This document shows positions 54,370 through 64,000 of a stretch of DNA of 64,000 nucleotides, in pieces. This DNA is from Iphione sp. A-MEVVRFRX5. Taxonomy: Eukaryota. Location: NCBI GenBank assembly GCA_976226885.1, contig OZ320323.1, positions 24,242,001 through 24,306,000 of the forward strand, given 5' to 3'. The stretch's first letter is position 1. Every line of letters starts with the position of its first letter. Under the pieces are notes generated by a model. It was not told where the DNA came from. It worked only from the letters and a program-made list of their open reading frames with translations, and did not search any database. The position numbers and the translations under genes were made by a program.

Positions 54370-59394
<5,025 letters not shown>

Positions 59395-60309
59395 CTAACT
59401 GCCCCGGGAGGAGGGGCAGACGAACATGGAGGAAAACAGCTGAAACCCATGGCAGAAGCTGTGCAGAATCTCACTAGTGTAACTCCAAGAGCCGCTAAAT
59501 CATCGGTCTCAGAACTTGCAGCTGACAGTACTGTGCGCAGGTCATCCTGCACCAGTTTACCCTCACAACAGCGGCGCCTGTCCAATGTGAGTGTGGCCTC
59601 TCTGCAGAGGCGACCATCGAATCTCAGTCTGGGAAGTGATCGTGGACTTCAGGAATTCCACGGTGGTCAGGACAATTTCTCTGTGGGAAGCCACTCAGGA
59701 ACTGGCACCCCGACCAGCCCTTTCAGTCCTGATGCTCTTCCCAGCAGTATGGCTGCTGGAGTTGGCAGGCGTAATATGATGCACCAACTCCGCAGACAAC
59801 CCAGTCGCCAGCTGCAAGCAGCAGATATCTGTGCTCTTATCCTTACTGTGTGTCATCGGATGCATTCGATGGTGATGGATGAAGGCATAGACTCAATATG
59901 TGATAAACTGGAAGGAACCTCATTGACTGAGGACCTGCAGGAGTTGTCGCATGAAGTTTCTGAGATATGTGTCTCAGTCAAACTGTTATCGCTTGAGGAA
60001 CTTCAGATCCTGGTGCAGCAGCTGTCACAACAGATGCGAAAGATGCATGTCAGCCAGCAGCCTGGAGATCCCGATTCAATACATCAGTTACTTAGTTCTC
60101 TGACACTACAATCACAGGACAGTGTTGCGGAGTGCAGAGATGTCAGCGAGTGCACCCGCAGGCTGGGAGGGCTTGAGCTGGCAAACGGTATTGGGCAAGA
60201 GCCTGCAGAATATGAAACTATGTGCCGTATGTTGCAGTACCTGCTCACATCTGAAAAACCTGAACCACAGACACTTCTCCATCACTTGCAGCAGCTGCAC
60301 CTCCTGTGA
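59395..60309 (+). CDS. In-frame C-terminal extension beyond the ANKRD54 UGA (candidate readthrough isoform, +305 aa)
   Basis: 304 sense codons continue in the same frame after TGA 59392-59394. The context is TGA-CTA, followed by a 7-bp GC-rich hairpin at 59399-59419. Confidence 0.7.
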   Translation, partial: LTAPGGGADEHGGKQLKPMAEAVQNLTSVTPRAAKSSVSELAADSTVRRSSCTSLPSQQRRLSNVSVASLQRRPSNLSLGSDRGLQEFHGGQDNFSVGSHSGTGTPTSPFSPDALPSSMAAGVGRRNMMHQLRRQPSRQLQAADICALILTVCHRMHSMVMDEGIDSICDKLEGTSLTEDLQELSHEVSEICVSVKLLSLEELQILVQQLSQQMRKMHVSQQPGDPDSIHQLLSSLTLQSQDSVAECRDVSECTRRLGGLELANGIGQEPAEYETMCRMLQYLLTSEKPEPQTLLHHLQQLHLL

Positions 60310-63300
60310 TTGTCCACGCTTAAATACGCACACTGGATTATTTTGATCCCCCTCCTAGACTCCGGACACATTGTCTTCTACTTTTCTACTCAGTCATTGT
60401 AGCAGTGTAAAACTAGAAAATAATTTGTCAGCACAGGGTCCCCTCCCACATTCTCTTACCTGGTAAACTGCTCTTTGGCTGAAAGCTTTAGCGGCCCAGA
60501 GTTTGCTTCTTGTGGCGCAATGATATGCAACTTGTTTTCAATGTTTCTTCCACTGGATGTGATGCACGGGCAGTAGAAGGACCTTACAGACTCAATCTCA
60601 TGATGGTATGTGCAGTGAAGATTTTCCTTCCTTGATCTAGCAGAAAAGTCATTCTGCAGATCACTGGAGCCGTTTCCCTGCACTTAACTGGCGGCAGGTC
60701 TATTCGCTGCTTTGTGTGAGTCCTACTGGCTAGCCTTGCAGTATTCGTCATGGAGTATTTTCCTTACATGCATCACATTTGAATTTTTCACCATCAGCTT
60801 GAGATGAAGGTCACAAGATACCAATGTCGTAGGAGCGGTTGTATCGTTGATCTTGCACATCGCCCTCATATCAGTGTGTGATAAATACCAGAAGAGTCAT
60901 CAGATTGTCAGTTTTTCTCCCTGAAACGGCGCACGAGATACCATATACATATATATAGTTTTCTATTTAATGATAATTAATATGCCTAACTATGCAAGCT
61001 GGTGGTGAATTGTAAATGACGGCACAAAGAGGAGTGAACATGAATATATACCGTCTACACAACGTCGAACTAGGTCATACAAAACACACCAACATACGAT
61101 TGCATAGATACCAAATTCTTGATGAAACTAAAACAAGGATAGATATATTTGTTAAAGAAAATGTACTACGGTCAGCTCGACAACATTCCATGTTTTGCAG
61201 AATATTGTAAGAGGATCCAATATTGCATATATATGGAAATACATGATGCCAAAAGCGACGAAATAGAGAATGTCCTATTGTCGAGGTGCACTGATGTGCT
61301 TTTTTCCTCCTCGAGTGCAGGGTGCTTTGTCAACTTAGCCTGAAAGAATTACCATGAGCTGTCACATGAAAATAAATATTCCCCCAGTGCAACAGTATTA
61401 CCAACGATGAACCAACCATTCCCACGATGTATTATTGAGGATAGTACACGCTATTGTGTAGGCTTCCTTTAGAACCAAATTTCATGAGTCAGTGGTTTAT
61501 TCGCAGTTGAATATGTCGTTATGCCTCGTGATTTTGCGAACTGGCTTAGGTTTTTGTTGCACCTGGTTATTATTTATTGTCAGGTTTCTAGGATGTTAAC
61601 GTACTATATTACCATGAAAACATGACCATGATATAAGGGCTGCCTGCACTATGGCATTTAACAGCATGCCACAAATATTCTTCACTAAAGTCAGCATGTT
61701 GAGTTGACCAGTACGTATGTGATATACTTGTTAGTCTAGCGTGTTCTTAGTGACCCGTGTGCTACATACTCTGATCTGAACTTTTCGTCAACAAAATAAA
61801 AACTTTAGATAATTTAAACATAATAGAACTGAAGTACCTCTGAGTGGGTAGACGACATCTACAGTTAACAGACTACACTAACTTAACTGGCACCGGTGAC
61901 AAGTTTGGAACTGCAAATGTCCGTTTCTGGGTTGTAACTGGCAACATAAGTGACGCATTACCGAGTCACTAAAAACATGTTACAGCACGATGTTCTTTGC
62001 CGTTTCTGATGTCATAATGGATTTTCAATCGATGAACATGTGTGGTTTTCTGAGTCAGAAAAGTATTTAACAAATTACATAGTGTAACATTTCGTAACCT
62101 CTCGGCGAAAGGTCAATTTTGACGTCCAAGTGAAGAGTCCTTCAGTGTGAGCTTCTCAGAGTAATCTTGTTTCCATGGTAATATGACTCTGAAATATCCT
62201 TAAAACCAACGAGTAGGAATCAATTGGTATAGATGTGAGAAAAGACTCAAACCCAAATGTTAGTTTTATGTAGTTAATGTCGTGTTGATTGCTTTTAGAC
62301 CGTATGGTGCTCAAGTAATATACACCGAAAAATGCATATTGCAAATTGAGTTGCAGTGGAAATTATAGGGCTGATTGGAGACATATCAGAAACCCTAATG
62401 TTGCTAAGAATTCCTTCCTGGTGTAAGGTTTTCAGCTGCCTTAGAAGAGCCTGTTCCGGATTTGTCCACTGAGGGTTACGTTCTGAAAGTGTACGGACTT
62501 ATGGACCTTAATTGCTTGTAGTTAATCACTAACAATTGCTGGACTCTAGGGTCTTTGACCTTCTTCCCGTTTCTTGCCACCAAATTAGAATTGAATGGCA
62601 GGGTGCAGACCGACAAGGATCGCAATAGCTAATGAAACTTGGGGTCAGAATGGATGGTCGTCTGCATTTCTTGCGTTACACTTTAATAATTTATAAATGA
62701 CTTGTCATTGTCGATAAAGCAGATGTATTGTTGTGTCAAAACCAGCAGACTTTCCGTATCTTGGCTGGTTTTGACCATTGAAATGATTTTCCTTGCATAA
62801 TTAGCATTTCTCATGATGTGCTCAACACAAGCCATTCGTGCTTCATAAAATGATTTGCCTCAAGGCTTTCATGTATGAGAAAATGCCGGCTTATTTAGAG
62901 ACCAAAAGCCAAACCTAAGTAAACACCGAAAAGTTAGATATGCTCTTATATTTGCACCAAATTTGTAGCACAATTCACAGCTTAAATACTTATATATTCC
63001 CGTATAATTCTTTTTTGAAAGCTGTTCTGCCTGGCGACAGAAACATTACTCCACTGCTGTCAGTTGCTGATTACCTTTTTAGGTGTAATGTAATATTTTA
63101 TCCATGAATATATCGGCGCAGTTAATATTTCCCGGTATCACCAACGGCAATGTACACGAGGAAATCTTAGATGTATAGAGACACAGGTTTGTTTTGAGCA
63201 CAAATTCATACGTGGGCAAAAAAGACTGCATCACCTGCAATTGTAGGGAAACTGAACCCCCCAGATATATCTAAATTTAATATCTTCAATTCGAATTTTC

Positions 63301-64000
63301 TAACATTAACTATTGATGGGTGGGACTCAAGGCGTTTTTCTGTCTATGAAGGCAAGCGTGGCCCTCCAACCTGGACCCATCCATCTTTAATGGTAGTAAC
63401 GACAGTATTTTCTTCGTCCTTCCGATTTGGTAGCAAGTCTACTTAATTACATTGATCTCACAGGGCTATTAGAAGATAGTCCGTAATGTGACAGTAGCAG
63501 AAGAGCGAAACGCTGTGCGTGCGTGTGTGTGCATGCATGTTTCCTGACTTATTTTAAATCTACTGTCATTGGCTTCTTTCAAACAAAATTGACCTCAGCA
63601 TGGCCTGACACATGTTGGATAAATTTCTTTTAAAAAAACTACAGTGAAGGTCGTGGATTCTGGAACACACTGAGTCTGTCTTATTTTGCCAGTTTCTATC
63701 TCTTGAAACCCTTCAGTGATTCTTCTGTGGCAAGGCCCTCCTCGATGTAGTTTTCACCTACAGCACAATCTAGTTAAATGAAAGTCGTATCTGTTGAACA
63801 GACACAGAGGTTTTCATTCAAAGCTGAGCTCGAAGATGCTTCCACAGCAAGTTGAAATTTGCGTTAAAAAACCTATACAAGATATGATAAACAGAAACTA
63901 GTGACTTGTATGAGATTGTGAATGTGATGCTCAGGATGTTCAGGCACACTGCAGTGTACCAGACCGGAGTTTAAATGTTGCTTCAAGCACGTGCGCATTA

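Follow-up and report, generated by a model that had tools for sequence, protein, structure and literature searches.

Does translation of the ANKRD54-like gene of Iphione sp. A-MEVVRFRX5 end at the stop codon that closes its conserved C-terminus, or can it continue into the long open frame behind that stop? The gene lies in a stretch of 64,000 nucleotides of contig OZ320323.1 (assembly GCA_976226885.1, positions 24,242,001 to 24,306,000 of the forward strand, with no N runs), which was analyzed as a whole and is referred to as the window; positions are counted from its first letter. An earlier note, made from the letters of this DNA alone, had described an ANKRD54 C-terminus ending at a TGA in a UGA-CUA-A context, followed by an intronless opening of 304 codons in the same frame, and had proposed programmed stop codon readthrough. 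Direct reading bore out these coordinates. The TGA at 59392-59394 ends the terminal exon and is followed by CTA-A, and frame 0 then remains open for 304 codons, up to the TGA at 60307-60309. The +1 and +2 frames of the same stretch hold 9 and 18 stops, respectively, and the extension frame is the sole long open reading frame (ORF) on either strand. Comparison with related loci supports the proposed mechanism: TGA is kept in all 11 lineages, CUA follows it in eight, and the post-stop frame is conserved as protein. The ANKRD54 gene of the window is therefore probably a programmed readthrough gene.

The gene was tentatively assigned to ANKRD54 by its ankyrin repeats, its C-terminal motif, and an apparent likeness to the human protein. 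Ankyrin repeats were recognized by Pfam in the upstream exons (Ank_4, E 5e-7; Ank, E 6e-5), the approximate cores of which lie at 57500-57630, 57940-58010, ~58390-58440, and 58600-58716, with unrefined borders. The terminal exon is preceded by an acceptor (...catcctcag/gtg) at 59215, encodes a peptide beginning with VIDMMKTYL, and shares 31-78% identity with seven other lineages (alignment A4). The repeats are followed by a C-terminal module with the motif LLxxFTxLxL at the position of the mouse nuclear export signal (NES). By position and motif, this leucine-rich segment would correspond to the C-terminal NES of mouse Ankrd54, of which the mutant LSL289ASA has been described (PMC5579962). Neither AATAAA nor ATTAAA occurs between the first stop (59392) and 61371, so a transcript reaching the first stop probably carries the whole extension.

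Conservation of the stop codon and its context

An exhaustive HMMER search of 1.84 billion protein representatives yielded 16 relatives of the extension (E 1e-74 to 4e-4), all of which were bare ORF fragments called on unannotated contigs, without a name or a Pfam family on any of them. Word-indexed protein searches returned two relatives with 55-61% identity and gave nothing beyond the exhaustive search. The protein P0009 (4024 aa) was set aside as a relative, since it matches the low-complexity Ser-rich part only. Twelve further loci with readable upstream DNA (L001 to L012) were compared with the window. The near-identical pairs L003/L004 and L008/L009 were each counted once, resulting in 10 further lineages, or 11 including the window. 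The lineages were told apart by sequence divergence, no contig was human or resembled human DNA, and the contexts of P0003, P0006, P0007, P0011, P0012, and P0016 stand outside the locus counts.

In all twelve loci, the coding sequence that ends in the domain of the extension comes directly after the ANKRD54 terminal exon, from which a single TGA separates it. The first stop is TGA in every one of the 11 lineages and is replaced by a sense codon or another stop in none; in the window and L001-L005 it is the identical codon, the 57th from the MM(K/R)xYL motif. The explanations that would make the stop trivial, namely a private nonsense allele, a sense codon in the relatives, or a sequencing error, consequently do not apply. 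The base at +4 is C in 11/11 lineages, and the full CTA follows in 8/11, as CTAG in L001, L005, L006, L007, L010, and L011 and as CTAA in the window and L002. In L003 and L004, CUA(G) is replaced by TGA-CAACCA (L003:4169-4177 and L004:4517-4525), which matches the tobamovirus-type CARYYA signal perfectly, while CAAGAG follows the TGA in L012 and CAT in L008/L009. The -1 base is A in 9/11 lineages (59391 in the window), in keeping with the known bias of leaky stops toward a preceding A. The second stops have T or A as the next base in 8/9 examined cases, contrasting with the C after the first stops. What has been conserved is therefore a stop in a known leaky context, with CUA in most lineages and CARYYA in one.

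Two predicted proteins, P0015 and P0018 (from L003 and L004), resemble natural fusions with W at the stop and were rejected as such, because the DNA reads TGA. The apparent W is due to gene calling under a TGA=Trp code, applied although the contig is eukaryotic, and gene calls of this kind yield artefactual "fusion" proteins that might be taken as evidence of a sense codon in place of the stop. L003 and L004 belong to one assembly, in which they occupy separate Mb-scale contigs and are nearly identical, being either haplotigs or paralogues. In both loci, the intron that precedes the terminal exon contains a degenerate repeat (L003:3400-3990 and L004:3750-4340). This repeat includes an ORF-like remnant (...DKSTLVQV.AWC...SHYLSQC.PRS...) and apparently stems from a mobile element that has decayed.

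Behind the shared stop, the lineages have diverged widely, with domain identity down to 22-34%, GC contents of 28-63%, and extension lengths of 179-431 codons. If the extension were the decaying remnant of a longer ANKRD54 left behind by a nonsense mutation, the presence of a stop would be accounted for, and nothing further. The same TGA in 11 lineages, followed by extensions that are still open and show coding-type substitution at such low identity, contradicts this explanation, because an untranslated remnant would have gathered stops and frameshifts. Its probability appears negligible.

An invariant UGA, never exchanged for another stop or a sense codon, would also be expected if it encoded selenocysteine (Sec) and the long protein were the main product, and in some genes Sec insertion can be aided by a 3'-adjacent stem-loop like that of the window (PMC4132726). 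Scanning with Rfam models (cmscan) detected no Sec insertion sequence (SECIS) element in the window from 58000 to 64000 at E<=10, nor in L001, L002, L003, L005, L006, L007, and L008 at E<=5. Moreover, the module before the UGA is conserved and the linker behind it poorly so, Cys-containing homologues and a redox-type motif are absent, and the conserved CUA(G) and CARYYA are signals of readthrough, not of Sec insertion. The Sec alternative, which the earlier note had also raised, is thus disfavored and seems very improbable.

The stem-loop in question is a perfect 7-bp hairpin, CUGCCCC/GGGGCAG, with exact arms at 59399-59405 and 59413-59419, starting 4 nt past the stop. In its 60-nt context the fold has an energy of -19.1 kcal/mol (z = -3.47), and none of 200 dinucleotide shuffles was as good. 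The hairpin described in the earlier note is accordingly present in the window, but its role as a general stimulator of readthrough finds no support across the lineages. L001 and L002 have weak 5-bp stems only, a 13-bp stem lies 6 nt past the stop of L012, and a common post-stop RNA structure was not found across the loci. Since 3' structures were gained and lost in ancient insect readthrough genes while readthrough persisted (Jungreis et al. 2016, PMC5100048), the hairpin is possibly a lineage-specific enhancer.

The open linker, its ATG codons and its introns

Between the TGA and the domain lies a linker of 36-274 codons, which is mostly unalignable between clades. Frame 0 of this linker is nevertheless open in every lineage, whereas the other frames contain up to 22 stops. 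The probability of an open frame, estimated for each lineage by shuffling the linker, ranged from 0.37 down to <=0.0002. The open frame is that of ANKRD54 each time, for which the chance is 1 in 3 per lineage.

This constancy of frame bears on the explanation that the stop is eliminated from the RNA, so that the extension would come from a minor isoform. The isoform might arise by an alternative splice that connects a donor before the UGA with a linker acceptor, or through conversion of the UGA to UGG by A-to-I editing. A GT is present at a conserved Val codon of the terminal exon, and cephalopod molluscs make very frequent use of A-to-I recoding. Splicing needs neither a shared genomic frame nor an open post-stop sequence, yet the frame is open in all lineages right from the codon behind the stop, and neither splicing nor editing would select for UGA-C-U-A. 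In addition, the A of UGA has a 5' G, a neighbor disfavored by ADAR. The locus L011, a contig with 28% GC from a Tara Oceans run, also speaks against removal of the stop. Its preceding exon is already joined to the terminal exon, while an intron occupies this place in all other loci that extend far enough upstream, so the contig is probably derived from cDNA, and it retains both the TGA-CTAG and the in-frame extension. We consider removal of the stop in the RNA unlikely.

The extension could alternatively be an independent protein with its own start, at ATG 59449, at a non-AUG codon, or by reinitiation, on the ANKRD54 mRNA or a nested transcript. The window indeed has this in-frame ATG 19 codons past the stop, and the A at -1 creates an AUGA start-stop overlap in 9/11 lineages. 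The AUG of the overlap is out of frame with the extension, and its frame closes after ~26 codons. Furthermore, no ATG is conserved in the extension frame, where the first one falls anywhere between codon 7 and codon 97, or past the intron of L007. In L001 it is codon 97 and follows the conserved RRPSC...QRRLSN...RRPSN block. No internal ATG can therefore serve as the start of the conserved protein, since conserved residues precede the first ATG of L001. The separate ORF from ATG 59449 suggested by the earlier note is contradicted by these observations, and an independent ORF would have no need to share the frame of ANKRD54 in all lineages. An own start is thus highly unlikely, and readthrough of the first stop remains the preferred explanation for the shared frame.

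The locus L007 shows how the link to the stop is kept where the extension is interrupted. Its post-stop frame closes after 84 codons, and a 465-nt GT-AG intron (L007:2518-2982, cag/gtaaac ... ccccgcag/tt) lies inside the extension, ~210 nt downstream of the first stop. Removal of this intron joins the frame in phase to the domain and restores one single frame of 320 codons from the TGA, so splicing keeps the extension linked to the stop. Termination at this UGA would leave an exon junction downstream, a configuration of the type recognized by nonsense-mediated decay (NMD). Readthrough or another form of escape may therefore matter for the stability of the mRNA in this lineage.

The extension as a protein

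In a comparison of the window with its two closest relatives, codon identity within the extension was 0.64-0.85 at positions 1 and 2 and only 0.31-0.40 at position 3, a kind of distribution that the upstream ANKRD54 exon shares. The Ser/Pro-rich region gave 0.64-0.80 and 0.31-0.39, respectively. The in-frame ORF behind the stop thus carries the evolutionary signature of protein-coding DNA, and together with the similarity to its relatives (E values down to 1e-74) this identifies the extension, on sequence grounds, as real coding sequence. The protein-like appearance noted earlier was in this way confirmed, and the motifs RRSS, RRLS, RRPS, and RRQPS are all present. The coordinates of the extension and of the surrounding features are listed in Table 1.

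Table 1. Features of the ANKRD54-like locus in the window
Feature	Positions	Strand	Basis or remark
Upstream ANKRD54-like exons with ankyrin repeats	57500..58716	+	Six-frame reading; Pfam Ank_4/Ank matches
ANKRD54 terminal exon, coding part, 59 codons	59215..59391	+	Kept in all related loci (alignment A4)
Leucine-rich NES-like motif (LLxxFTxLxL)	59341..59370	+	Alignment A4; 7 codons before the stop
Putative leaky stop signal UGA-CUA-A, A at -1	59392..59398	+	TGA and C at +4 in 11/11 lineages, CTA in 8/11
Post-stop linker, 47 codons, poorly conserved but open, coding-like GC excess at codon position 1	59395..59535	+	
7-bp hairpin CUGCCCC/GGGGCAG, 7-nt loop	59399..59419	+	Lineage-specific
Predicted disordered Ser/Pro-rich region	59536..59730	+	Conserved RRSSCTSL, QRRLSNVS, RRPSNLS, TPTSPFSP (alignment A1)
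Conserved six-helix domain, ~165-175 residues, ending ...YLLTSEKPEPQTLLHHLQQLHLL	59782..60306	+	Alignment A3, 17 sequences; AlphaFold2
Second stop, TGA then T	60307..60309	+	Direct reading
First canonical AATAAA after the first stop	61371..61376	+	Motif scan

The C-terminal part of the extension belongs to a domain family whose end follows the consensus ...CRMLRYILT......L..YLQQL..L. AlphaFold2, run on the alignment of 17 sequences, predicted six helices with a mean pLDDT of 75.5 and a pTM of 0.73. The domain had no match in Pfam, none in the PDB by sequence profile search or Foldseek, and no meaningful match in the ESM Atlas by shape or by features. A metagenome scan with alignment A1 produced 168 pattern matches, of which none was confirmed. 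The proposed resemblance of the extension to the terminal module of ANKRD54 received modest support: the second-helix region of the domain aligned with the module before the export signal over 29 columns (hhalign probability 76%, E 2e-5), and the domain holds LLSSLTL, which is akin to the export-signal-like motif.

Downstream of the extension, an actin gene on the minus strand lies tail-to-tail at a distance of ~1.2-1.4 kb in two of the loci (L006:7015-8551 and L007:5167-6908), which represents conserved synteny. Rfam matches to mir-3533 at the same two loci fall within the actin coding region, with scores well under the gathering threshold.

Predicted readthrough and its relation to known systems

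In the mechanism that we propose, most ribosomes would terminate at UGA 59392-59394 and release the canonical ankyrin-repeat adaptor, which ends shortly after the export-signal-like motif. A minority would decode the UGA with a near-cognate tRNA, favored by UGA-CUA, by the A at -1, and in the window species perhaps also by the hairpin. These ribosomes would add 304 codons, encoding the Ser/Pro-rich segment with RRxS motifs and then the six-helix domain, resulting in a predicted protein of ~590 residues. UGA-CUAG drives 3-31% readthrough in human cells, and UGA-CUA alone drives 1.5% (Loughran et al. 2014, PMC4132726). The signal of the window consists of exactly the six nucleotides UGA-CUA, and by analogy the efficiency may be expected to lie between ~1% and tens of percent. 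As the extension starts 8 residues past the export-signal-like motif and partly repeats the module before it, one may guess that the long isoform undergoes a phospho-regulated change of nuclear export or partner binding. Control of the RRxS and TPTSPFSP sites by basophilic and proline-directed kinases would be a reasonable idea.

Several points weigh against this interpretation. Three of the 11 lineages lack CUA, and none of the other loci, L001 and L002 included, conserves the hairpin. At L012:640-700, a 2-nt shift within a GTGTG run separates the frame of the linker (137 open codons) from that of the domain, both being otherwise intact; the shift could reflect an error of assembly, a polymorphism, or a break specific to this lineage, and in the last case the link between linker and domain could be broken there. 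The number of independent lineages depends on divergence as its sole yardstick, the cDNA origin of L011 is deduced from its structure, and SECIS elements were searched for by Rfam models only. Finally, the case for readthrough itself comes from comparative genomics.

The closest parallels are the vertebrate UGA-CUAG genes AQP4, MAPK10, OPRK1, and OPRL1, along with MDH1, LDHB, and VDR (PMC4132726). As in these genes, a UGA with CUA(G) directly behind it has been kept in distant species, the frame beyond it evolves as protein, and two isoforms would come from one mRNA. ANKRD54 itself was found on no published list of such genes. The known vertebrate extensions differ in being short (13 residues in MAPK10, PMC4132726), whereas those of the ANKRD54 lineages comprise 179-431 codons and include a folded domain. 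The window also has A instead of G at +7, and the ANKRD54 lineages appear to be invertebrate.

In Drosophila kelch and further insect genes with long readthrough products (Jungreis 2011/2016), a single UGA likewise stands before a second ORF that is long and conserved and carries domains. The ancient cases among insects show an excess of TGA-C, and the turnover of their 3' structures matches the non-conserved hairpin of the window (PMC5100048). They belong to other gene families, while the stop context of ANKRD54 is of the CUA(G) type known from vertebrates and alphaviruses. Judged by divergence, the conservation of the ANKRD54 stop also seems to extend beyond one order or class. Among viruses, the UGA-CUA of alphavirus nsP3/nsP4 and the CARYYA of tobamoviruses are hexanucleotides shared with most ANKRD54 lineages and with L003/L004, respectively (PMC4132726). 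The viral signals differ in producing polymerase fusions and not the product of a cellular gene, and the tobamovirus CARYYA follows UAG, not UGA. Mammalian ANKRD54 (Liar), which shuttles between nucleus and cytoplasm as an adaptor of Lyn, Btk, and Txk, also combines ankyrin repeats with a C-terminal module ending in LLxxFTxLxL (PMC5579962), but no extension has been described for it.

No paper was found that joins ANKRD54 with readthrough, the sole "stop codon" paper being an unrelated NMD study, and no named protein among the 1.84 billion representatives carries the domain. The ANKRD54 stop is very probably a case of programmed readthrough not reported before. The case is notable for the length and folded nature of the extension, for its apparent age, and for a domain found only downstream of the ANKRD54 stop. 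A bolder reading, which may well prove true although we stop short of favoring it, is that the UGA-C(UA) stop has been held since before several animal phyla split, gating a domain that occurs nowhere but in the ANKRD54 readthrough extension, and that it is among the oldest cellular readthrough events. If so, it would explain how the domain escaped all protein annotation, and UGA-CUA, so far described for vertebrates and viruses, would become a pan-metazoan recoding signal.

Conserved readthrough genes are few outside insects, and the known vertebrate extensions are short. In ANKRD54, the shuttle of Lyn and Btk, a folded domain seems to be reachable only via readthrough of a stop, and standard annotation would consequently miss about half of the long isoform and the entire domain family. 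ORF fragments from unannotated contigs, when compared with each other, can reveal such recoding events. ANKRD54 would thus offer a natural and apparently ancient test case for the action of UGA-CUA outside vertebrates, for the coexistence of readthrough with a downstream intron despite the expected NMD, as in L007, and for the modulation of a C-terminal export signal by an appended domain.
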